A stretch of 63,946 nt of DNA, counting the filler, from Polymyxa betae A26-41 (Eukaryota > Protista > Endomyxa: Phytomyxea): the NCBI GenBank assembly GCA_003693705.1. It is 5 parts of 5 records of this genome, joined end to end, with 100 filler letters (N's around TTAATTAATTAA, not from the genome) between each part and the next. Parts side by side here need not be neighbours in the genome. Positions count along the whole stretch, not along the records: positions 23,476 to 51,468 come from RBZT01000356.1; 4 more parts are not named here. One strand, 5' to 3'. Made by a program: the position numbers and the translations under genes. Below the pieces are notes generated by a model. It was not told the DNA's origin. It ran no database searches and saw only the letters and a program-made list of their open reading frames with translations. Below are positions 24,883 to 48,995 of this stretch, piece after piece; the stretch's first letter is position 1, and each line of letters opens with the position of its first letter.

Positions 24883-26348
24883 ATGTCCAAGAGCAAGGCT
24901 GATGTTTACGCCGAGGCTCGGGGTCGAAGGCCTCAGAAGGAGTTTGCCGATCTGTCGGCATTGCTCTGGGGCGCCCTGCGCCGCCGGGCCTGGCAGTCGG
25001 CTGGCGAGGTGCTGCGCGCAATCGGGGCCGTCTTCGATCAGATGCCCATCGATTTCATGAAGGGCGCCGTCGAAGTCACGAGGCGTCGATTCTCGGCCGA
25101 ACGCATCTGTAAATTCCTCAGACAGGTTCAAGCCATTCAGGATAAAAACCCGGGAGAGAATGAGTTCGTGCAGACAAAATATTATGTAGGCTGTGAATGG
25201 TTCCCAATCATGTTTAAAGTTTTCTCTGGTTTTATCTTCATGCTTTGAATTATTATATTCTGCAAATGTTTTCAGTGGTTCCTTGTTCGGTTTCCAGAAA
25301 TGTTATTGAATTTTTGATTTTTCGGTTCGGTAATGATTGGACAGAGGGCGTATATTGTGGCAGAGGTCGCCTTCCATTTGTGTCGTATGGGTTATCTATC
25401 TCAGGCCTATGAGAACATGAAAGCGGCGGCCGTCCACGAAAAGTTCGCCTCGATAGCGTTATTCCATGCTTACACCGGGATCTTAGGCGTTGAACTTGCC
25501 AACAACGCTGCCGATCCGGATAGTCCTGAAAATAGGACCATCCTCAACGATTCCGTCCAAGCCTTACGAAGGGCTCTTGAACTGGCCCATCATTGTGATG
25601 TCGTTCTGCTCTATTTAACAGATGTCGCTGTGCGTTACCCCCATCTCGGTATCGAAGCCCACAATGAGATCGCCCAATTCACTGCGCGAAATCCAACTAG
25701 CCCTTACGCGCGTCGCTTTCATTTCAACTATGTCAAACATCATGGTAGCAATGACGATCTATTTGACGCTGGCTTCGAAGTATTGATGCTGGATCCGGCA
25801 TCTTCTGTATTTAACGATCTCGTCGAACTCTCTGACAAAAACCTTGTTGATCCGGGAAGGATGACGACCCTTTGCATACACCGACTACAGTATACACTGT
25901 TGGACCTGTCAGCCTGGAGGACATTAGCCGTACTGCTTCCGAATGTCAGCGAGGTCACCGTGCCCGAAGACTGGTGGCTTGATATGCATTTTCGACATCC
26001 GCGGGCGCTGGCCCGAGAGCTCGGGCTGCCGTTCGAGGAACCGGAATATATTGGCTCTAATCTTCCAGGTACGATTACAGACCTCGATCGAGTTGCCTGA
26101 TTGTGGTCGTTCACCTTTTGATAGCGCTGTCTAATGACGAATCATCGGAGATTCTGGATGCGCTTGTTTACAAGACCATCTGCGCCAGCTATTTCCTGCA
26201 TGAAGGATCCGAATCGCGGTTCGTGGTGGACACGATCGGAGCTCTGCTTGAAGGCGAACAGATGGGTCGCGTTGATCGAATCCGCGACGGGATTTCCCAG
26301 GCGTCGATGAATCGGGCGAAAAAACGTAGAACGTCGTCCGCTGTGTAA
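24883..26348 (+). CDS. TPR-like protein resembling the RNA Pol I SL1 subunit TAF1A/Rrn11 (~3 exons)
   Basis: AYTGIL, NPTSPYARRFHFNYVK, LSAWRTLAVLL and WWLDMHF parallel TAF1A motifs (AYKGLL, NPNAHIYLYNFLK, AWKYLAKYL, WWPGFHF) in the same order. Introns at ~25162-25346 and ~26069-26124. Confidence 0.65.
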
Positions 26349-28987: not shown

Positions 28988-31900
28988 CTACATCGATGAA
29001 AGATGTGCGATCTGGGAGCTTTGCACAGACGCTCGGATTCCCGACCGAGCGTCAACGGTTAATGTTTCGGGCTTTGTGGTCTCCATCATGGCCGTCGCTC
29101 GCTGTTCCATCTTCTGCCGCTTCTCATTCGACATCGATGGCACATTGAACGCCTTCTCCAAGTTATCCAGGAATTTCTTCATGGGCCAGTACGTGCACAG
29201 GAGCGCGATCACCGATGCCAGACATTCGATGCCCATAATCGATCCTTGCAAGAACACTTGCTGGGACAGCATGACGTTGTAGCGATCCTGAGGGACACCC
29301 GTCGCTTGATATGCGTTCAGCATGAGCGGAGTGAGTACGACATCGTCGGTGGAGAAGAAGGGCGAGATACAGACGGTGTCGGATTGACTTTCGATGTTGA
29401 GACCCTCCTGGACGAACATGCCGTCGGTCTGGTATGCGCTCACGATCCCGTCTTCAAGCAGATTCGGATATGTTTTTGTGATATCCACCGAGTAACCGAC
29501 TCGGTCCGAAGTCTGAATCACGTCTTGATATCGAACCAAAATTGGCAGAGTTGAACTGCACAAAACAGTAGAGGAAGCATCAAAATGGAGATAAAAACAC
29601 TGCTGAAACTCCTGGTCTTTGGAAAACAACCAAAGAATGTGCAAAAACGGGGCATGGTAACCTTTCAAAACAGGAACAAACACCATTGTTAATGTAAGAC
29701 ATTCTCGAACTTGATGAAAATCATGGGGGGGGGGGGTTTACAAAAATGAGGCCACTTTCGCAAATGTAAACCATTTTCTTTCGACCAAAGATGAAACGAA
29801 TGATAGAAAATGCAAATCGTGTGAAGTTTTTGCATGTTGAACGTTTTTTTTCGAGCAAGGCTACCTTCAATACACTTGAGACAACGGCGAACTTCTGATT
29901 GAAGCGATCCCATTCAAAAAGCCCTGTACATAATTTGTTTAGAAATCCGCAACTCAAAAAGGGTTCATGTATTACCATAATACCCGGTACCAAACGATTC
30001 AATAATACTGTCCCAGAGAGAAGTCTTGTTATTCAGAATAGTCATCACTACCATAGCACCGACCAGATTGCCCTTTTGTAAGGAATTGGTTGTCGCTATG
30101 ACAATATTAAGAAACCAGTGCGAAAAATAGCCACTCTTTACCATTAAATGTAACGGAAGTAATGGGGGATACAGCGAATTGAATGAAGACCGGCGCATCG
30201 TCCTTATTTGGACGATGCGGGGTGAATTTTTTCACATAGGACTGATGCCAATTCGTGATCGTCGTGAATGTAGCCAGTGCGTCATTTTTAAAGTAGTCCA
30301 TGATGCCGACTTCGGGAAATACCATCCCTTCACTACTCTCATAACTACTTACAATTACAGTGGAGTCTCTATGAAGGAAGATTAAAACTTGAGACCAAAA
30401 GCCGATAGCCGACAAATTTCTGAAAATAAAAGTTGAAGAATGTCCAAACAGGTAAAAAAGGTTTGTAAAATGGAGTAGAAAAAAGGTCGAAAAAAATGTT
30501 CAAAAGAAGGATTTAGAACGACGTACAATCCAATCATGTACATAGCATCGGCGGCGAACAATTGAAATCGCAAATCGAAATCTCTGCGAAAGTCGCTGGT
30601 AACGTTTCGAGCAGTCGCCGCGGAGACCACGGAGCTGAATCCGGTCCAGGAGTGCAAGCTCTCAGAGATAGCGCGAGAGTTATGGGCGACCAAGAATGGA
30701 CCAACACGACCCTAACACTTGAGGTCAGAATGACCACATCAAACGCTACAGTAGACGAGCCTGTGTGGTGGCCGAAGTGAAATGTTCAATCGACGATACT
30801 AGCACGTAACGATTGGCGAATATCAGTCCCAGCAAGACAGCCTGGACCAGCACGGTCTTCGACAGCAGAGCCCAGAACGCGCTTTTGCTCGATTTTAGCT
30901 CTCGGATACGATCATTGAATTCTTTCAATCTGCGATAAAATCATGTCAAAACAAGAACATTTTCAGAAAGCTTTTTGAATTGTCATCCAATCTCGGAACT
31001 AAAATAAAAAACGAATTCAGCATTAAAAACGTGACAGAATTGTTACTTCTTTTTTCTGACTGATTCGATAAGCAGTTTCATGGGATTCAGAAACCTCACA
31101 TCTAAACTTATGTTAGGGTACCGAATCATAAGACGTTACAATCGATGTTACAGGCGAGCTTGAGCGTAACGAAACTCAGTATGGTCATAACGACCCCAAA
31201 CGGAACATGCCACAGCAGGGTGGTACTAACGACCTTCTTGATCGCGTTCTCCGGCTCGGCGTGGATGATGACGGCCGCAGTGGGCGGAATTTGACCCGCA
31301 GTCGTCGATCCGAGTACCGGACCCTGTATCGGCAAAGCACCGAATGTGTATTCGATGTCCCCTGGCAACATGAACAAGACGCAAAACGTAACGTGAAACC
31401 TGTTACCAAGAGATAAACGCCCGATTTGAACAGAGCCGCTGGCGAAGGCATCGTTCAGATAGCCCGAATCGAAATGAGGTAATAGGTCCGGAAACTGAAG
31501 CGGGTAGCCGATATCGCCGGGTTTATTGTACGAGAACTCAGTCTGCCAGGTCCCATTCGAATTCCGAGCCAGCACCGTTACCAGCGACGAAGTCGTTAGA
31601 GATACCAATCGATTCATAATATCATATTTTCGCGGCGTTATGGCATTACCTGACAAATCAAGGTCATGTAGCTTGGCTGGTATTGATTGTTGGACGTACC
31701 CATGACAACGTAGCCGTGTACATTAGCGGTGCCGCAGACTAAAGGCGTTAATACGAGACGGACGAGCGTCTCTGTCGAGTTTCTCCATGAAGATAATTCG
31801 GGATGATATTGCCCTTTAGCGTCAAACACGGATGAGCCCACAGTCACGAACAAGCTAAGCGGCACCATCACAGACACTTGCATCTGAAGCAAAATAAATG

Positions 31901-32749
31901 GAACTGTAAAGATACCTGTAATGAGATTGACCTGTTGACTGGAGTCTGGATATTGCTGGAAGGTATTCGTGACAATATTCTGTGGATTGAAGGTTTGTCC
32001 GAGAGCAGTGGCGGATCCGCCATTGGCCATTATGATGCCATTCGTATCGGTAATGAGCTCGATCTCGTTACGCCTCCCTTGGAGATCGTTCATTAAACGT
32101 TGCTTATACTGATCTTGTGCTGATTTAACTCCTTTGAGCGTCATACAGGACGTAACAAATGTCTGATTCAGAGCAAACAGATTTGCTCCGAGAGTCTGCC
32201 CATCTTATCAGTACAATAAACATATCTCGTCAATACAAAATGTAAAACAAAATATTTTATCGATACAATGAAGAAACAGCATGAAAAAAAGGAAATTTAT
32301 GAAATGCAAACACTTCTGAAGCATTATGTAGAAAACAAAAAGACTTACCAGCCGGGAAAAGACTTCGTTATAACGAAAGCGATAGAATCCCATAATATCG
32401 GTAACACGATCTTCAAGAGCGCCATGCAGGGATTCATTCAGCCAGATCATTTGATAGGCGAGAGCTAGTAGTACAATCACATCTGCGATAATCACCACTA
32501 ATAAAGTCGTCTTCTTAACCGAATCGAGCTTATCCGACTGCTTTTTCTACACGATCGAGATTATAAACCCATTGTTAAGCATGCAGAACAATCTCCAACC
32601 TTAATACGAGAGGTAGTCCCGCTGGAATTCTTGCCATCAGAATCCCTCTGGGTGCTGCTGCTGACGGTACTGGTCGGCTGGTTCGTGGAGGAGTTCCAAG
32701 GCCTCTGCTGTGGAATCGACATCGCGTCTAACGAGCTCTTGACGTCCAT
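28988..32749 (-). CDS. Multi-exon 4-TM membrane protein with two extracellular Cache-like sensor domains and no recognisable output domain
   Basis: TM1 LLVVIIADVIVLLALAYQMIW. Domain 1: LMNDLQGRRNEIELITDTNGIIMANG..GQTFNPQNIV..LVRLVLTP..GYVVMG..VTVLARNSNG..GRLSL(G)DIEYT..AVIIHAEPE. TM2 at ~31140-31220 and TM3 TVLVQAVLLGLIFA. Domain 2: HRDSTVIVSS..EGMVFP..FIQFAVSP..GAMVVMTILNNK..FGTGYYG..TGVPQ. TM4 IMGIECLASVIALLCTYW, then a ~60-aa tail. Confidence 0.75.
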
Positions 32750-32899: not shown

Positions 32900-33330
32900 G
32901 CATGTCACATGATCCCTGTGACGTGTCAAATGAACGGAGAGCAGCAGCCCTCTGATTTGGCTGCGCTGCCGTAGAAAGGCGAGCAGGCAAACAAAAGCTC
33001 GGGGAAACAGCTGGCGATTATTGACGAACCCCTGCATCTCAATCAAAAACTGAACGCGAGTGACAAAATTTGGCGAATACTTTGAACAATGTTCTGTCCA
33101 ATGAACAAGTCAAAACCTGATACAAAACTGCAAACACATTTTGTTGATAAACACGGAAAACCTGTGTGGTTGCGGATGTGAGGTTAGCAGCCTTCGACGT
33201 CGAATATGAGACCCAGCCGGACGCCCAGGAATTAGAAGAATCTCGGAGAAAAGCGCGGTCGATCGTACTACGGCTCTGGTCCAGCAAGTTGATGCGTTCG
33301 TTGAATTCTTTCAGCCTGTTAAGAAACGAT
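32900..33330 (-). pseudogene. Degenerate partial paralogue of the 4-TM sensor gene
   Basis: RLKEFNERI...LTSATTQ|gt mirrors exon 30761-30929 (LKEFNDRI...FTSATTQ|gc) with the same donor position. The next exon aligns only weakly and with frameshifts. Confidence 0.55.
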
Positions 33331-33811
33331 TCTGCTGCATACGTAGACGATAAGTCGCCTACGTAATCGGAATGCCCTGTGTGAAGGACAACATGATTTG
33401 CTATTTCCATTTCATTCTACAATGCGCCTTTGCATGTCGAATGGGTGAAGTTATCGTCGTCAAGAATATGCACTCATTTACATCCACGATAAAAAAATAC
33501 GTTCAATCCTTGAATGGCCGTACTGGCCCGCTATCCAATGGAGATATCAGCTGTGATATCTCCGACATGCAGTATTGTATTCACATCTGCAACCTGCAGA
33601 CAGAGTGAAGCAGACGGTTTAGCTCTCATGATTTGCCCTTGGATGGGAATTGTCATAGCTCGGTACCTGACCAGAAAGAATGGTCGATGGGTTAGAAACC
33701 CTAACCGCCTTATGGCGATATTATGATCGAGGTCACTATGAATGCGCCGACTCCTTCTCATTCCAGTCTCTTATAGCTGCGCTGATGACAAGCCACTCTG
33801 CTGGTTGAATC

Positions 33812-36800
33812 TCAGTCTCCTCCCTCCCCCTTGATCAGATAGGCGGATGGGCGAACGTACCTGGAATATGATTGTCATAAACGCTGAGAAGATAGGGAAT
33901 ATGTGTTTGGAAACCCTAATGAGTGTCAAGGTTGAAGTTGAATGTATTAATCGACGTTGATAAATAGGGTTAGGGAATTTAATCCGCTGAATTGCTTGGA
34001 TGACTTTTACCCTTTGGTGGGAATGATTTCGGAAGTTTCTTGCCCTATTGTTTGCGTCTTGAACTTTTCTTTGACGACGGTGACACTCTCTCCCGCTACT
34101 GAATGAGTGTGGCATTCACCTGTCGCCAGATCGATAGTGCACCCGCCAGCAGCCGCATATGGACATTGCGGTAGCAATTGCGGCATGTAGAACTGACTTG
34201 GAAAATGCAGCTCGAAAGGCTTCTCGACGGCGGACTTGATCCATTGCAGTTGAAGCGCGGCATCGGGACAATAGCGCTTGGAAGAATTTCGACTCATGAG
34301 CCTTTTCACCGTACTCGTCACATTAGCTGGTGCGCGAGTTCTTGATAGATTCAGTTCGCCGCGTTTTGCCTAGATAAGATTAGAAGCAATGTGGAGTTGT
34401 TCCAGAGGCCTTACGGCCGTGGTATCAAGATGACACGATTCAGGTGTCAATAGGCGATAGATCATGGCACCAGCACTCCACATATCGGCTTTGGTATTAT
34501 ATCGCGAGCCTTGTTCAACTTCCGGAGCCACGTAGGAAAGCGTCTCACGATCCAACGCCGAGATGTGGAATTTTCTCAAACCGATATCGACCATCTATAA
34601 AATCCATCAGTGATGGGCATACAGGACACCAAACAGCAAAGTCTCCAAAAAAAATTAGAAAGGAAGTTGATCTTCCGAACAAAAAAGCAAACGCGTTTAA
34701 ACGTTTTTTAGCTGGAAAACCAGCTCAAATGAAAAGCCATCAGAACCGATTACCTGAATACGATGCTGCCTCAGTTTATCTAAGTGCAGAAGGATATTAC
34801 AAGGTCCCAAAACCCTAAACTTTCATATGAGAACGGCTGTACATTTGAGTACATGATTCGGATTACCCAAGGGCCATGCCGTGAGAATGCAAATATTTCA
34901 GGCCAGAAAAGACCTGACGCATGATCAAGGCAACACTGTTAAGCGACAGGACGCCGCACGCTCGAATGAGTTCATCAAGATGGACCCACCCTAAAAAATA
35001 TCATTTTCAACCAAACAAACAGTTGCATCCTAAACATCGGAAACAGTTTTTCGAGAAATAACCAACAGTCCGCAGCAGCAATTCATAAACAAAACAAAGT
35101 TCAAAAATTGATGAAGTTATGGGAACCCGAAATGACAATTACGTGGGATATGACGACGTATGACATAGATCTTGTAACGGTCTTCGTAGATAGCGACGGT
35201 GGAAGCGATGCATGGATGCTCGGCGAACCGAAGAACTCCAGCCTCCGTCCTTAGGGCGGCCAGGTCGGTCTCTTTAACCACTACAATATTGAAATCAAAA
35301 TAAGTTCACAGCACAATCGAACATATACGAACTCAATTTGTCGATATATTTCATCATGTATCGTTTGCCGGTATGAGCTCCTTTACATTCGAACACGTTG
35401 GGAAGACAAGGATGCACGACATGGCTCATATGATAATGTTCCTATGAGCATGAGTGAGAAGAACGACATTGCTGAAAAGCCAACAACAAAAGATGCTGCT
35501 AGAAAACCAGAGGAAAAGAAAGATCAAATCCAAAAATGTTCTGGGAAAGTGCAGCAAAAGCAACTTGTAGAACCAGGAGTCAGTAAAAGAAAGGCAAATG
35601 CAGAAGGCAGTCCAGAATACCAAAAACTCATTCAAAAGAGACCAAGATTCATTCAAAAAGAGAGAAAACTGAAAACTCCAGAACGCTCCAAATCTCATAA
35701 AGAGCCATTACCGCAAGAATGAAATTTCGGGAAGCAACCCGGATAGCTTTCACCCATGTATCGCGTTGTTCAGCAGTGTACACGAAGATGATTCGGGAAA
35801 TGTTCGACAGAGCTGAGACTAATCGAAAGGCGAACCGTGGCCGGGCGTTGTTGGGCAAGATAGGGTCGGAAACCTCTTCTCCCGTAACGAACGGGTTACA
35901 TGTCGCTCCAGACAGCGGCAGCACTAAATTTGGCTTCACAGATTCCTCTGTATGGAACGAGTACATCATGTTATTTCGAATCACGATCCAGCGTCGTTTC
36001 AAGCGCTAGAAAACCGTCACGAATCCAAACACATGAAGTAGTGACAGCTTACTCTCAAAAACCAGGTTTGCTTGAAGACGTAGCCGTGCATGGTCGCCGT
36101 ACTGCAAACATTGCTCTCGTGTTCCCCAATGAGAAGGTTTCGATCAGGATCGTCGCAATCGAAGTCGGATTGACGATAAAAGTTCAACGTGTGAATACAC
36201 GACGACGTCTCAGGTCCAGAGATACTGCAGATCATGTTAACACCTTGTATAATGATATCATGATAGAAGATTACCAATATTGAGGTGTTAAGGCTCGATC
36301 TAGGCAAACATAGCTATCAAGATTATGTGCATTCATACTATAGAGAGAATCAGCATTCGTATCAGGCGTTGTAAAACACGAAATTACCAGTATTCAGGGA
36401 AGGTGTATCGATGAAGGCACAGAAAGGTCCCTGCTACCGGGCATGTCTCGCAATCAGCGACATCGGTGGACGAGACCATCGGCATGATATGGAATCTCTG
36501 GTTCGGGATGACAGGCGGTAGATACGGGTCGGAGCAATGGCAGAGCAGGTCGCCAGATCGAATGGCGATCTCCAGGACGAAGGTTCGTAAATCGGCAAAA
36601 GTATCATGCTTGTCAACCTGACGTCAATGTTGAGGAATCGCCGAATACAGAGGCACACTCTAGCATTACCAGACCATACAAATCACCGGCCGGGATGAAG
36701 CCCGGTTTACCTCCATCATCCATAATCGTGTCAGCGATCTCTCTTGCCTGAATACATTCCTTCAGCACAAATGGCTGTGAAAAGAGACACAAAACATTGG

Positions 36801-37517
36801 AGGCAAAAGAAGAGCATAAAATCGACAGGAAACGAAAACCACAGCACTAATCTGTGGAAAGAAAAAAAATGAATTTGAAAAATCAGATAAAAATGAAAAA
36901 AACCACAGGAAATTCAACAATTACGAGCTATTTGTAGAAAGCAATGCGAATAAGAATACCTTGAGATCGGCCATCATGATATAGCCAGCATCATGGACGT
37001 TAACGCCCATCATATTGCAGGCACTATCAATAAGCAGATCGACAATGTGGATCAACTCGGGTCGATACACTTTGCGATCGAAACCGCCATAAAACATATC
37101 TCTCACTAAATCAATCTGAAAGCACAGCAGTAAGCTCAGATGAAAACATAATTTGATAAAACCGATTGAAAGTTTCATAAAACTGTCACCTTTTTGGAAC
37201 TTCTAGCATTCGTAAAGAGGCAAAGCGCCAGAAGGAAGTTGTTATAGTTGATGGCATCGCGATGGTAGTAATCAAACAGGTTAAATACATGTTCAGCCAC
37301 TTCCGGTCCTATAGCGAAGAGCTTGATGAAACTTGCCAGATCAATAGTCCGATCATGGCGCCGAGAGACGATCTCCCGGAATCGTCGGCGGATTGCAACG
37401 AAATCGTCGATCGCACAAACTGAGTGCTCGAGTAAGTCGTTTGAGGGCGCCAGACAAGGATGCCCACTAACAGAGCTGGCAGAATTCGATCGACTTGCAC
37501 AACACCAACGACGTCAT
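33812..37517 (-). CDS. EF-hand-PH-pseudokinase protein, paralogue A (CDPK7-like architecture)
   Basis: Start MTSLVLCKSIEFCQL|F. EF-like AEHVFNLFDYYHRDAINYNNFL. PH HGYVFKQT..KRRWIVIRNNMMYSF..EQRDTWVKAI. Kinase YMMKYIDK..LRTE..LKYLHSHGMALG|VLGPCNILL..VDIGL..YVAPE..KADMWSAG. The 3' end is 33812 if the last intron is spliced, otherwise 34007. Confidence 0.85.
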
Positions 37518-38355
37518 ACTCAGATTGCTTAAATGGGATTGTAAAGTTCATCGCATTCTTTGCAGCAGCAAGTTGCGTCAAAATTCATCCAGTTTTGAGC
37601 GCACAAACTGCGCGGAGAGTTCGTCGACTTTGGTGAGCGAACCGACTGTATGGAACATTCACAGTCAAGGTCAGAAACTGCGCACACATTTCATCCAGTG
37701 TTTTGTGTCCACGTCTTCTTTCATTGATTTTGGTGCATCACGGGAGAGTGGTAACTGACGACGTCGCTGCTGCATCTGGTCATGATACCCCTCAATCAAT
37801 CTCAGTTTTACAAATGCGCTTTCTCACCACTCGATTGACAAATAAAATCTGGTTCTATCCTGGAAAAACGTGTGATTGCGAACTTGATTGTGAAAGTATG
37901 AAGGTTGTTTATTGGCTTTCGGGTGAGAAGGACGGATCCGAATCGGCGCAGCAGGGCTGACATGAGTATCCACAATCATCGAAGCCGCACCTCTGTGATT
38001 AGGGCACGAATGAAATCGGCCCGCCAGTTGACACTTGACCCCATCTGCGGATCCCGGCGGAATCCCGCCGCCTTGCTGCTGCATAATACAGGCCAGACCC
38101 GCAACGGTTAGACTGTTCTTGTTACGGTGTACCTGAATAAGCGGCTGAAACTGCTGCTCACCTCGCTGCTGCATCTTCTCAGTAGTTTTCATTCAGTGGC
38201 GCCATTGCCAGCCTCAATTTCTATGCGGTTATTATCTCTCTGCTTTTGCGATTATCTTCGCTCTCTCTTTCTTTCTAATGCTGGATATCCGCTATGCTTG
38301 TCTGAGGGACTCGTCGGCAATCAACAGCAGTCGCGAAACCTGCGAAAACCTTAGA

Positions 38356-39861: not shown

Positions 39862-40193
39862 CAATCGTGCAGAAAATAGCGTAGAGCGCTGCTAGTCATT
39901 TAAATGATTCACACAAGTGGATAGTTTGCGTTACAGTTCAAGTTCAATCAAGTAACGAGATGAACAGTAACGATTATCATGTCAGCAGGGTCGGCGGTCG
40001 CTGGGAATGGGCGCGACCTGCTTCAGTTCTCCGGCCTCCGCGAGTTTGGTCGTACAATGATGCGTGGGTCCGTACACCTTTCCGCGAAAATTTTCAAATC
40101 TTGAATCGTAATTTCGGCAGCGTCATCTGGAAAGGCATCTGGGCCGCGTCGCAAATCCACCGCAACCGTAACGTATCAGAGGCGGAGTAGCGC
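39862..40193 (-). pseudogene. Duplicated 3' end of pseudokinase paralogue B
   Basis: High identity to ~45250-45614 (last coding exon plus 3' flank), with a ~35-bp deletion spanning the stop codon and small indels. Confidence 0.9.
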
Positions 40194-41454: not shown

Positions 41455-42396
41455 TCACCTGCGGAAGAGCGATTCTGGACGGAAATGATAGGCCCGGGTG
41501 TTGCTGGTCAGATTCGTGAATCGATGTTTCTGTGCAATAAGTCGGTAAACGAACCCCTGACAGCCTTCCTTTCCATCATAGCAGATCCTGGTCGATTGTA
41601 GATCATCGAAGATCATATTCGCACAGGATAGATCCCATTTATAGCTCACAAAGCTGATCAGATCTTCGAAGACTTGTCTCCTATCAGGTCGAACAATCAT
41701 CGATTTCCCAATCCAGCGATTATTCAGAAATGAATCTTTCCCCGATCTATCATCTTGGGTGAAAATCTCCTGAATGCTCACGCCAGATGCATATCCTGTA
41801 ATCAGCCAGAACATCCATCTTGTCGATTTCGAACTTTGCTTGATGATATCGGCAAAGTGCTGCAGACCGATTCGAGGCAGGTTTGGACTCCAGCCGAACC
41901 GTCCCAGATCCGAGGCGATTTTCCTTTTCGCAGATTGAAGCGTTTTCGGTAGCGAATGCCTCTCACAGAACACGGCGACTTCGGTAAAGCACGTGAAGAC
42001 GCTGATCGAGCTGAGCAGATTATCGCAGAGCTTCGCGGCTCCATCCGACATCATAAAATCAGCGATATGAGCGACCGCCAGGACGTCATCAGGACGATCC
42101 GCGCTCAGCTTGACCAGGCCGTACACGACCTTGAGATAGAGTTCGAAGCAGGACGTCTTATCGCATTTGGCGTGGAAAGAGAAACAGGAATCAGGGAGGT
42201 CGATGGTGACAGATTTCATGGCATTGGCGACTTCGAGTCCATCTGCTTGCCAATGCAGAAATTGCTCCAGATAACGACTAGCAGGACACATGACGACCCG
42301 ATGACATTGGAACGATCGATCGCCGACAACCAGCACCAGATCGCAGCATTGCCCATTGTTGTAGAGAGCGTTGACGATCGTCTCGGCGTTGAACAT
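41455..42396 (-). CDS. BTB/POZ (BACK-like) domain protein, 313 aa, intronless
   Basis: LYNNGQCCDLVLVVGDRSFQCHRVVMCPASRYL..FELYLKVVYG..VLAVAHIADFM..LCDNLL. Confidence 0.88.
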   Translation of the reverse strand: MFNAETIVNALYNNGQCCDLVLVVGDRSFQCHRVVMCPASRYLEQFLHWQADGLEVANAMKSVTIDLPDSCFSFHAKCDKTSCFELYLKVVYGLVKLSADRPDDVLAVAHIADFMMSDGAAKLCDNLLSSISVFTCFTEVAVFCERHSLPKTLQSAKRKIASDLGRFGWSPNLPRIGLQHFADIIKQSSKSTRWMFWLITGYASGVSIQEIFTQDDRSGKDSFLNNRWIGKSMIVRPDRRQVFEDLISFVSYKWDLSCANMIFDDLQSTRICYDGKEGCQGFVYRLIAQKHRFTNLTSNTRAYHFRPESLFRR

Positions 42397-45050: not shown

Positions 45051-45403
45051 ATAATTCATTCCTAGAGGCGTTCAGATAAGATGCTGGAATTGGGAACAGC
45101 CTCGGTTTGCTATCATGCGCCCAAAAAATGACTCTGATTGTAAACGAGCACTTTTTGATGACTAAAAACCAAGGACAGGATGTGCCACGGAGTATCGGTT
45201 ATCAGGGTAGACACGGTACTATTTAGTCTTTCAGGCTCGTAAAGTTCATAATCGTGCAAAAAAAATAGCGTCGAGCGCTGATCGTCATTAAATGATTCAC
45301 AAAGTGGATAGATTACGTTACAGTTGAAGTTCAGTCAAGTAACGAGATGAACAGTAACGATTATCATGTGTATTTGTAAACAATGTTGCGGCACTGCGCC
45401 TGA

Positions 45404-48400
45404 TCAGCAGGGTCGGCCGTCGCTGGGAATGGGCGCGACCTGCTTCAGTTCTCCGGCCTCCGCGAGTTGGGTCGTACAATGATGCGTGGGTCCGTACACC
45501 TGTCCGCGGAAATTGTCAATCTTTAATCGTAATTTCGGCAGCGTCATCTGGAAAGGCATCTGGGCCGCGTCGCAAATCCACCGCAACCGTAACGTATCAG
45601 ACGCGGAGTAGCGCCGTGACGGATTCCGGTTCAGCAGCCGCTTTAGAGTGTTTAAGACTTCCGGGCTACCCTGAGTCCGTATCAAATCCAGCTTGTCATC
45701 TTTCGCCTAAAAGGATAACGTAAGCGGGTAACGTAGCGTGCAGTCAGATTATGTTACGGCTTTCAGGTTGTTGAGGTTGGAGCCCGGCGTCAGCAGGCGG
45801 TATATGATGGCGCCGACGCTCCACATATCGGCCTTGGGACCGAACTGCGCGCGGAGTTCGGCCTCCGGGGCAATAAACGAATGCGTCTCGTCGTCCAGCG
45901 CCGATACGAAGAACTTTCGCAGTCCGATATCAACCAACTATTGCATGAGTTAAACCGCAGTCAGGAGCAAAATATGCGAGAATCGAAAACTGAAGAGCAA
46001 TTTGAAATATTACAAAACCATTGATCAGAAAGCAAGTCCGAACACGGGGAGGCGAGTGCACGTCCCGAAAACCTTTCAAATAGAAGCAAGTCGAAAAGTG
46101 AAAATGCGCCGATATTTGCAGCCCCATTGCAGAATTTTGATAAGTAAATACAAATTGTCAAGTGTGTGACGTCAGAGGAACGAAGATCAGAAGCGAAACT
46201 GCGCAATGATTTTCATAACAGTGCAAAATGCGAGAAAATAGTGCGCAGTGTCAAAAAGTGCGATAAAAATGCGAAGTCACTTGCCTGAATGCGATGCGGA
46301 CGAAGCCGATCAAGTTCAACGACGATATTGGCGGGTCCGAAGGCGCTGCAAGACGCATCAGTTTGCTGTCCGTTCGAGGTGATCGTACATACCCGAGTAC
46401 CATCCCGTGACTATGAAGGAACTGCAGCCCGGCTATGGCCTGGCGCATGATCAGCGCCACACTATTGACCGACATGGTTCCGCCCACGCCTATAATCTCA
46501 TCTAGACGAACCCAACCTACATAGTCATGTTAGCTCAACTGTTTTCGATGAATTTTTTTGAAAAATATTTGATTAACATTTCTTTGCAGGTTTGAATGAG
46601 AATCTCGAAAGGAAATGTGAAGACAAACGTGTTGGAAAAGATTGAGAAATGAGTTCATATTACGGGGAATGAAGTGCCTTAAGATGTAAATCTTAGCGCG
46701 GTCTTCATATATAGCCACAGATTGGGCAATATCGTGGTGATCGGCGAATCGCAGAACGCCGCATTCCGTGCGCAACGAGGCCAGATCGTTTTCCTTCACC
46801 ACTACGGCTCAGTATCAGTTTGTTGATGATGCCCCCGACGGACGAGTACGAACAAGATTTGTCGATAAATTTCAGCATATAATGATGACCGGTCATTGCT
46901 CCTTTACATTCGAACACGTTAGGGAGACAGGGATGCACTAGACTGCTCATTTGATAATGATCCTAAGACAAACAAACACCCGTGGTTAGGTTTCATGAAA
47001 TTCAAAATGTTGAATTTCAAGAAACAAAATTAAAGACAAAGGTAAAAAAAGCGAAACTGAACGACCACATATTCACGATTCTGAAAATTTTAAAGTCGAT
47101 AAAAACACTTCTAATAAAAAGTAAAATTGTCACAGAGTATCAGAGAGGAGTATTCAAGAGAATTCTTACTGCAAGGTCGAAAATTGCGGCGGCGATGCGG
47201 ACAGCGCGGATCCATCGATCTCGCTGTTCGGCAGTCTGAAGATAGATAATACGCGCCAAGTTGGCCAGCGGCGAGACGAGCTTCAAGGCGAAGCGCGGTT
47301 TGGTGGCCTCTGGCGTCACTTCGTCCGGAATCGGATCGCAAAGCGCTCCGCATAACGGTATCACAATATTCGGCTTCATGGACGTCTCCTTATGGAACGA
47401 GTACAGCATGTTGTTGCGGATTACGACCCAGCGACGTTTCAACCGCTAACTAGGGTTTTAGGGTTTCGTTGGGTCGGATTTCCAGTAAACTTACATTCAG
47501 AAACCAGGTCTGTTTGTAGACGTAGCCTTGGATGGGAGACAAGCATTCTTCGGACTCCCATGGCCGCTGTCCGTTCAGTCTAGGATGTAACGTTTCGATG
47601 GTTGCGCCGGTAACGTAAATCCCCGTACCTGGATTCCGGAAAGATGTAGCGATGCAGGTCGTCGTCCACCCGGAGCGTCCTCGCATTCGATTTCTGGAAA
47701 AGGTTCGTTGCATTGGTGGCTCCACTGGCGACGCTCAAAGCGAAATCTTGCAGCTCGACGAACGTGTTATTGACTTCGATCTGACATCACTGGGTCAGAA
47801 GATCCGGCGACAGGAGACATCGAAGATGTCGTTACCAACTGATAGAGCTCCTTGAGCGTGACCCAATCGCGGACTTTCAGCTTACTGAGCAGTATGTCGA
47901 CGACCTCATTCGCCTGAAACTATGCCTCAACAAATGCCGAACAGCCGCCACGACAAAATTCTAAAAGGATAAAAATGGTTTTTTGTAAATAAAAATTGCG
48001 AAAATATGATTATTGAAAACAAAAACAGCTGTTGTGAAAACGTGAAAACAAACAATAAAACAGGACGAATGAAACATAAAAAAAAGGATTTCGGAACGAT
48101 AAAAGATTCGGAGTCGTGGAAACGTTCTGCTAATTTGGAAAGATTTGAAAGAAAACGCGAAACTTTGTGAAACATTTCAGTGCAGTTCAGCGCCAATCGG
48201 CCGCACCTTGATATCGGCATTGTTGATATACTCGGGATCGTGAATGTTGACGGTCATCAAGTTACAGGCGTTGTCGATGACCAAATCCACGATGTGGAGC
48301 AGTTCGGGGCGGTAAACCTCCCGATCGTTCCCAACACAGAAGATCTCGCGAATCCTGTATCGGTCGGACCAGATATCGAATTTAATTACATCAATCGCAC

Positions 48401-48995
48401 TTACAAATCCACCTGCTGAACGTCAACGTCGATGCCATATAACAGCTGGCAGACTTCGCGAAACTTTGGTAAAAAGAAAATCCAAAATTAAAATAGACAG
48501 TACCCAATAGCAAAGGAGTTTGAATTGTATTTGAGACACTGCTGAGACTTGAACTTTGATAAACAATCAATTTTTTTACAAACTTTGGAAACAGTCTTCA
48601 AAACAAAGTTTGATAAAACATTGTCGAAAATTTGACGTTAGTTTTAGAAACACGAGAAAATACCTTCTCTTCAGTCGGCGCCTTCGTGAAAGTACAGAAG
48701 GCCAGAAGAAAGTTGTTGTAGTTGATGAAATTCCTTTTGTAGTGATCGAAAACGTCAAAAACGTGTTCTGCGAGATGCGGTGCGATGGCGAATAGTTTCA
48801 GGAAATCGGCCCGATTGATGTTCCGCTGATTGGAGCGCCAGGCAATCTCCTGAAAGCGATGGCGAACATTGCCGAGATCCTCAACGGCGCGGACTGAGCA
48901 GATTGCCACCGTTAGGCCGTGATCGGATCGGGCCAAAAAGTTACCAGACAGAGGCGACAGAACTCAAGCGATTTAGAGATAGCCGAGGACGCCAT
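45404..48995 (-). CDS. EF-hand-PH-pseudokinase protein, paralogue B
   Basis: Start MASSAISKSLEFCRL|F. EF-like AEHVFDVFDHYKRNFINYNNFL. PH QGYVYKQT..KRRWVVIRNNMLYSF..EQRDRWIRAV. Kinase VHPCLPNV..YMLKFIDK..LRTE..LQFLHSHGMVLG|AFGPANIVV..VDIGL..FIAPE..KADMWSVG..LLNRNPSRRYSA. Exon structure parallels paralogue A. Confidence 0.87.

Follow-up and report, generated by a model that had tools for sequence, protein, structure and literature searches.

Positions 32749-28988 on the minus strand of the DNA analysed here carry an intron-rich eukaryotic gene whose product we believe might be an unusual membrane sensor. The window is a 63,946-nucleotide stretch from Polymyxa betae A26-41 (assembly GCA_003693705.1), joined with filler from five parts, and the gene lies within the 28-kb piece of the window that derives from RBZT01000356.1. 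The existence of this gene, its eukaryotic nature and its many introns are matters of direct observation. Our best overall explanation, to which we assign a probability of roughly 0.55, is that its 13 exons encode a four-pass membrane glycoprotein with a dCache-type first ectodomain, and that a separate partner reads its signal.

An intron-rich gene with independently reproduced splice junctions

Three-frame translation of the minus strand, combined with inspection of the junctions, yields a model that runs from an ATG at 32749 to a stop codon at 28988-28990 and stays open for 896 amino acids (aa). All 12 introns are canonical GT-AG introns, with lengths in order of 53, 153, 48, 50, 45, 50, 117, 88, 107, 46, 52 and 262 nucleotides (nt). 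Two of the resulting splices, EVFSRL/TLGANL and DSSQQ/MQVSVMVP, are reproduced by independent gene models (P0001 and P0011) made on a near-identical contig from a sugar-beet assembly. P0001 is GenBank KMS93467.1, 'hypothetical protein BVRB_031190, partial [Beta vulgaris]', located on a 756-bp unplaced contig of GCA_000511025.2, and P0011 is a UniParc entry from the same cluster, with exon 2 spliced to exon 3 and exon 3 to the beginning of exon 4 precisely as modelled. With 12 GT-AG introns and two junctions reproduced in this manner, the original prediction of a eukaryotic, intron-rich gene is well founded.

Intron positions are likewise common to the homologous environmental contigs L002, L003 and L004, and on one Logan contig the fragments P0008 and P0007 are separated by 25 nt at the place corresponding to intron 3. 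When the window is compared with the beet contig (L001), the exons are identical except for one substitution (L213R) and the 48-nt intron 3 carries three indels, which is the pattern expected for coding versus intron sequence in two isolates of one organism. Introns of 32 or 39 nt after 'NLITG' were also considered and rejected. The 48-nt intron at 31931-31884 is preferred because it is supported by P0011 and is insensitive to the indels that distinguish the isolates. The substituted residue, aa 213 (31858-31860), is Leu in the window versus Arg or Lys in the beet contig and in all homologues (VPLSL versus VPRSL, IPRH and IPKE), a substitution specific to this isolate at a site that otherwise conserves a basic residue.

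Predicted membrane topology

Family, search and fold tools were run on single exons or on unspliced references, and the joined translation was used only for hydropathy and self-comparison. Kyte-Doolittle analysis of the joined product gives four strong hydrophobic peaks, at aa 64-86, 392-414, 453-476 and 808-830. The predicted layout is a transmembrane (TM) helix, ~305 aa, a second TM helix, a 38-aa basic linker, a third TM helix, ~330 aa, a fourth TM helix and a 66-aa tail. Lys/Arg-rich flanks are found on the predicted cytosolic sides, namely before TM1, in the TM2-TM3 linker and after TM4. Eight of the ten N-x-S/T sequons are located within the two large loops, and C133 and C254 do not vary across the family alignments. 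Because the four peaks are accompanied by basic flanks and by sequons and conserved cysteines in the loops, the arrangement proposed originally (TM-domain-TM-short linker-TM-domain-TM) is confirmed at the level of prediction. Both termini are predicted to be cytosolic and the two large domains extracytoplasmic. Hydropathy, basic flanks, sequons and conserved cysteines would therefore place these domains outside the cytosol between two TM helices, as is typical of Cache domains.

A possible Cache-like fold for ectodomain 1

Two indirect lines make a Cache-like fold for ectodomain 1 reasonably likely. A protein language model applied to exons 3-4 returned neighbours of which the ten best named clusters, without exception, belong to dCache_1 or the Cache clan (0.94-0.96, recognition 3285). 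An AlphaFold (AF2) model of the same exons, built from a 10-row alignment, was discarded at a predicted local distance difference test (pLDDT) value of 34. For exons 5-6 the AF2 input was unspliced, and hence the model includes 15 intron-encoded residues. This model is of low confidence (pLDDT 48, predicted template modelling score (pTM) 0.44) and presents its elements in the PAS-like order alpha-beta-beta-alpha-alpha-beta-beta-beta. When it was used as a Foldseek query, the top 50 matches were almost all PAS, LOV, GAF or Cache sensor structures, at weak E values of 0.009-0.1, and its neighbours in the ESM Atlas were sensor regions of bacterial kinases and chemoreceptors (template modelling scores of 0.5-0.64). 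By inspection, the family-invariant 'LVLTPLxCG...GYxxxG', with a helix and then a second hairpin after it, also resembles the strand pattern of Cache domains.

The Cache assignment made in the original prediction thus stands weakly for ectodomain 1, through the language model and the low-confidence AF2 fold, but neither its extension to ectodomain 2 nor the proposed sequence-level tie to cyanobacterial methyl-accepting chemotaxis proteins was sustained. A Cache-like ectodomain 2 is a tentative suggestion at somewhat less than even odds, made by analogy from nothing more than its position and size.

Relationship between the two ectodomains

It had also been proposed that the two domains share an order of motifs. 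Smith-Waterman alignment of aa 87-391 with aa 477-807 gave a score of 28, compared to a shuffle mean of 35, and 485 of 500 shuffles scored as high or higher. Profile comparisons (hhalign) between the ectodomains returned probabilities of 0.1-1.1%, and tblastn searches of the pieces against the whole 28-kb piece found no similarity between the halves. A faint echo can be seen between the hairpins 'ELITDTNGIIMANGGSATALGQTFNP' and 'LIFLHRDSTVIVSSYESSEGMVFPE' (hhalign E 0.048, probability 1%), and a 'PMK' motif found after each of TM2 and TM4 does not reach significance (z = 1.4). As judged from the sequences, the shared motif order is no more than chance, and neither Smith-Waterman, hhalign nor tblastn detected the homology between halves that would define an internally duplicated, pseudo-dimeric protein. 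If the two halves nevertheless arose by duplication, the signal would appear to have been erased.

A conserved cytosolic segment next to TM4

Pfam searches of all exon pieces and of the downstream minus-strand open reading frames (ORFs) at E<=1 gave no match to HAMP, MCPsignal, kinase, cyclase or RGS domains. Two homologues of the last exon (P0012 and P0013) terminate 56-68 aa after TM4, and because they stop at about the same place, we consider the 66-aa tail to be genuine. These ends, together with the lack of any known domain in the downstream minus-strand ORFs, make onward splicing into an output domain unlikely, which was a concern raised with the original prediction. The accompanying statement that HAMP/MA, kinase, cyclase and RGS domains are lacking and that only a tail of ~60 aa is present agrees well with these findings. 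The broader description of a protein with no signalling output holds in so far as no known domain is present, but the tail is not featureless, given that a 35-aa cytosolic segment after TM4 is conserved.

Within the last exon, identity between the homologues and the window is 33-64% for the ectodomain part (48% over the longest comparison, of 90 residues) and 65-74% for TM4 (P0012 and P0013). It reaches its highest value of any last-exon region, 78-83%, in the first 35 cytosolic residues (WPMKKFLDNLEKAFNVPSMSNEKRQKMEQRATAMM), and is 13-16% in the remaining tail. Given its strong conservation, this segment is likely the best candidate site at which a partner could bind and read the receptor.

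A family that is almost invisible in public data

The family comprises two beet-assembly contigs and nine environmental ORF fragments, the latter spread over seven short contigs from six samples. A phmmer search with exons 3-4 as one unspliced reference produced nine matches, seven of which are true relatives, all short fragments. The other two (P0005 and P0009) were rejected as repeat-protein false positives. Protein identities are 39-67% for the environmental contigs L002, L003 and L004, and 55-65% for the last-exon homologues P0012 and P0013 (contigs L005 and L006, ENA ERZ778523). One relative comes from a wetland metagenome. A homologue search with exons 5-6, under a length filter that removes the short homologous ORFs, recovered just the fragment of the window itself. 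Scans with family patterns revealed no confirmed relative in 185,579 prokaryotic (bacterial or archaeal) genomes, and none in two scans of metagenome contigs.

The beet contigs represent contamination that has been annotated as beet protein. A fragment of the gene is present as a tiny contig, KQ102445.1 (L001), in the published sugar-beet (RefBeet) assembly GCA_000511025.2, and its annotation as a Beta vulgaris protein (KMS93467.1, UniParc UPI00053F39BA) has carried this contamination into protein databases. The second contig, AYZY01091925.1 (L007, GCA_000510975.1), is 100% identical to the window over 567 bases; its assembly has a neighbouring accession, and the organism is unconfirmed. Introns of 45-55 nt and dense gene spacing exclude the beet genome itself as the source. 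The GC content of the 28-kb piece is 46.1%, and the P. betae draft is described as unannotated, 27 Mb in size, with an N50 of 61 kb and a GC content of 45.1%, from material grown on the beet line of the reference assembly (PMC6328671).

Weighing the alternatives

That a single gene spans both halves is, in our judgement, quite probable. The alternative is a pair of adjacent genes, with gene A comprising exons 1-6 and extending to a stop at 31126-31128, and gene B starting from an ATG at 31079-31081 (MKLLIESVRKKK...). Both products would be TM-ectodomain-TM proteins in the bacterial style, and the apparent linker would be a modelling artefact. Such an arrangement would explain why exon 6 meets a stop 24 nt past its modelled donor and why an in-frame ATG is located in the mini-exon, and it accommodates the observations that the halves are not detectably related, that homologues of each half came from separate short contigs, and that no homologous contig or transcript spans the TM2-TM3 junction. 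However, the gap from stop to ATG would be just 44 nt, whereas elsewhere in the piece neighbouring genes are at least ~300 nt away. Furthermore, the reading frame continues across the junction through two canonical introns (50 and 117 nt), each of which starts with GTAAC like two further introns here, 50 nt is the usual intron length in this gene, and the bridged product keeps the positive-inside rule. We therefore consider two genes to be rather improbable.

Even if a single four-TM protein is produced, it might not be a receptor. It could serve as an adhesion or recognition glycoprotein (e.g. in host root attachment) or as an auxiliary subunit of a channel or transporter, which we consider unlikely, if slightly less so than the existence of two genes. 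Several points favour such a role: an output domain is lacking, glycosylation sequons are numerous in the ectodomains, which also have conserved cysteines, and the eukaryotic Cache proteins known so far (the calcium-channel protein alpha2delta of animals, and CACHD1) act as auxiliary subunits. Cache function in eukaryotes has been described as unknown (PMC8915833). Conservation peaks in TM4 and the cytosolic juxtamembrane segment and not in the ectodomain, as would be expected if information or partner contact passes through the membrane, but this weakens the non-receptor proposal only mildly, since the same pattern also fits an auxiliary subunit. An equally unlikely proposal holds that Cache has no relation to the ectodomains, which would be alpha/beta domains specific to this lineage, and that the language-model and fold hits reflect only the generic succession of a helix and a beta-sheet. 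Against this, the PAS/Cache class was indicated for two independent pieces of domain 1, each by a different method, and the position between two TM helices, the ~300-aa length and the long leading helix fit a dCache domain.

Several results weigh against the four-pass, dCache-type protein that we favour. Pfam gave no Cache match at E<=1-10 for any exon piece, for P0011, for P0012 or for the ten members of alignment A1, and because this family profile test failed, the gene is not filed as a Cache member (Pfam clan CL0165, dCache_1 PF02743). Searches of the PDB by phmmer and hmmsearch, for which both single sequences and the profiles A1, A5 and A6 served as queries, were empty or returned noise, and tblastn of exons 3-4 against plasmids likewise produced only noise. 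An exhaustive phmmer search with exons 3-4, covering 1.84 billion representative proteins, recovered no sensor protein from bacteria at E<=0.001. Given that neither phmmer nor the genome scan uncovered a bacterial protein, the motif match to cyanobacterial PilJ-type chemoreceptors that had been proposed for this gene was not reproduced and is unsupported at the sequence level. The language-model matches share only 145-155 of 256 features with exons 3-4, as might be seen with a distant relative or by chance, the last exon gave no usable language-model match, and nothing bears directly on the fold of ectodomain 2. Exons 7-12 have splice logic as their sole basis. Finally, the hexapeptide TSATTQ, which recurs upstream of the gene as described below, lies in modelled intron 8, and thus either this boundary is wrong or a short segment has been duplicated.

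Features of the gene and its neighbourhood

Coordinates of the gene and of the predicted features of its product are given in Table 1.

Table 1. Exons and predicted protein features of the P. betae gene, in window coordinates
Feature	Position	Strand	Remarks
Whole gene	28988..32749	-	ATG to stop; 13 exons, 896 codons, open, all introns GT-AG
Exon 1 (aa 1-50)	32600..32749	-	cytosolic N-terminus (predicted), rich in Ser/Thr
Exon 2 (aa 51-116)	32349..32546	-	carries TM1; splice to exon 3 seen in P0001 and P0011; homologue L003 67% identical
Exon 3 (aa 117-204)	31932..32195	-	long helix, first hairpin, invariant C133, FNPQN motif; donor CAG/GTCAAT confirmed by P0011
Exon 4 (aa 205-266)	31700..31883	-	invariant C254, 'LVLTPLxCG...GYxxxG'
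Exon 5 (aa 266-347)	31407..31649	-	homologous in L002 and L004
Exon 6 (aa 347-417)	31152..31361	-	end of ectodomain 1 and TM2
Exon 7, 55-nt mini-exon (VRFLNPMKLLIESVRKK)	31047..31101	-	links the two halves; in-frame ATG 31079-31081; splice-site logic alone
Exon 8 (aa 435-478)	30800..30929	-	remaining linker and TM3; 3' boundary uncertain
Exon 9 (aa 479-540)	30527..30711	-	start of ectodomain 2; no homologue found
Exon 10 (aa 540-633)	30142..30419	-	exon model
Exon 11 (aa 633-673)	29976..30095	-	'GNLVGAMVVMTILNNK...GTGYYG'
Exon 12 (aa 673-692)	29865..29923	-	junction to exon 13 least certain in second half
Exon 13 (aa 693-896 and stop)	28988..29602	-	end of ectodomain 2, TM4, tail; homologues P0012 and P0013
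TM1 (TLLVVIIADVIVLLALAYQMIWL)	32439..32507	-	Kyte-Doolittle peak 2.58
Ectodomain 1 (aa 87-391)	31228..32438, introns included	-	probable double PAS-like / dCache-type domain
TM2	31159..31227	-	Kyte-Doolittle peak 1.88
TM3	30806..30877	-	Kyte-Doolittle peak 2.04
Ectodomain 2 (aa 477-807)	29258..30805, introns included	-	fold not established
TM4	29189..29257	-	Kyte-Doolittle peak 1.83; 65-74% identical in homologues
Conserved cytosolic juxtamembrane segment (WPMKKFLDNLEKAFNVPSMSNEKRQKMEQRATAMM)	29084..29188	-	78-83% identical in P0012/P0013

An upstream ORF at 33042-33416 (minus strand) shares with the exon-8 region (30749-30940, minus strand) the pattern 'F..RLKEFN(D/E)RI..L..S.S' and, ~45 aa later, 'TSATTQ' (tblastn E 0.001; Smith-Waterman 61 versus 25.7 +/- 4.5 for shuffles). 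The underlying DNA matches at 20 of 23 bases, and the mismatches fall at third codon positions. An upstream paralogue at 33042-34400 was considered on these grounds and rejected. The region shares only the ~20-aa 'RLKEFNxRI' stretch and the TSATTQ hexapeptide with the studied gene, and it belongs to or follows a PH-domain kinase gene.

This kinase gene is one of two paralogous genes for PH-domain protein kinases (PH domain Pfam E 1e-6), located at ~34000-37600 and ~45100-48960 on the minus strand, ~11.5 kb apart, with direct repeats D2 and D4 that are 77-80% identical. The copy upstream of the studied gene ends just before it. A repeat of ~280-310 nt also occurs twice, at 39915-40193 and 45302-45614, with 94-98% identity. 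An intronless ORF of 313 aa at 41458-42396 (minus strand) carries an N-terminal BTB/POZ domain (Pfam E 6e-8); a search of 5.8 billion proteins recovered no homologue of it at E<=0.001, and it has no exact record. On the plus strand, an open frame of 260 aa at 25318-26097 resembles TAF RNA polymerase I subunit A weakly, at a level below threshold (E 0.007). Rfam gave no match across the whole 28-kb piece.

Proposed mechanism and significance

The product as we envision it would be a four-pass membrane glycoprotein of ~896 aa, with both termini in the cytosol and each ectodomain of ~300 aa held between a pair of TM helices. Ectodomain 1 would consist of a long N-terminal helix and two PAS-like alpha/beta modules, forming a dCache-type ligand-binding domain that may be stapled by the conserved Cys133-Cys254 pair. 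Ectodomain 2 would occupy the equivalent position without detectable sequence similarity to ectodomain 1. Ligand binding outside the cell might then shift TM2 and/or TM4 within an intramolecular bundle of four TM helices, as occurs in dimeric bacterial Cache sensors, and a separate cytosolic or membrane partner could read this signal by docking on the basic TM2-TM3 linker and on the conserved 35-aa segment after TM4. We infer the Cache fold, ligand binding and signal transmission, and a role as a chemoreceptor is speculation.

A far more specific version can be imagined, in which the gene encodes a single-chain, pseudo-heterodimeric Cache receptor restricted to plasmodiophorids, made by fusion of two highly diverged, bacterial-style TM-dCache-TM units with no VWA insertion, coupled to a transducer by a conserved 35-aa cytosolic helix, and used by zoospores of this virus-vectoring parasite to sense the host root. 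We regard this full combination as a long shot, less probable than any of the alternatives weighed above.

P. betae is the vector of the rhizomania virus, and to our knowledge no receptor has been identified for host recognition by its zoospores. A surface sensor of this organism would be a candidate for that function, and its downstream partner could be sought directly through the conserved 35-aa motif of the tail. If domain 1, and perhaps domain 2, is a Cache domain, the gene would encode a eukaryotic Cache protein built on the bacterial TM-sensor-TM plan, doubled in one chain and lacking a known output. If true, a family that is almost invisible in public data would provide a new entry point to the re-use of a prokaryotic sensor by eukaryotes.

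Comparison with known sensor systems

In terms of function, the bacterial dCache_1 sensor domain is the nearest analogue. In contrast to bacterial dCache_1 sensors, the P. betae protein has no profile-level similarity to this family and no HAMP, MCPsignal, HisKA or GGDEF output, and its gene is eukaryotic, with 12 spliceosomal introns. Moreover, two ectodomains and four TM helices would be present in one chain, whereas the bacterial proteins are homodimers of two-TM subunits. No amino-acid-binding Y/R/W/Y/D motif is evident, and by inspection only, the invariant FNPQN seems to occupy that region instead. Methyl-accepting chemotaxis proteins are distinguished by cytoplasmic HAMP and MCPsignal domains, whereas the 66-aa tail is Pfam-negative. 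In CHASE receptors, such as the plant cytokinin receptors (CHASE4 structure 8wct), the outputs are a histidine kinase and a receiver, and Pfam found no CHASE match in the gene.

Among eukaryotes, all dCache_1 proteins surveyed have a VWA insertion and one dCache_1 domain nested in the other (Gumerov et al. 2022, PMC8915833). Pfam searches of all exon pieces gave no VWA match, which sets the gene apart from the dCache_1-VWA proteins. Like alpha2delta, CACHD1 and their protist relatives, the proposed protein would display extracellular Cache-type domains without an enzymatic output, and the two double-Cache units that those proteins carry per polypeptide would be a further likeness. However, those proteins have a single anchor, whereas the tandem domains predicted here would be split by TM2, the linker and TM3, and would each be flanked by TM helices as they are in bacteria.

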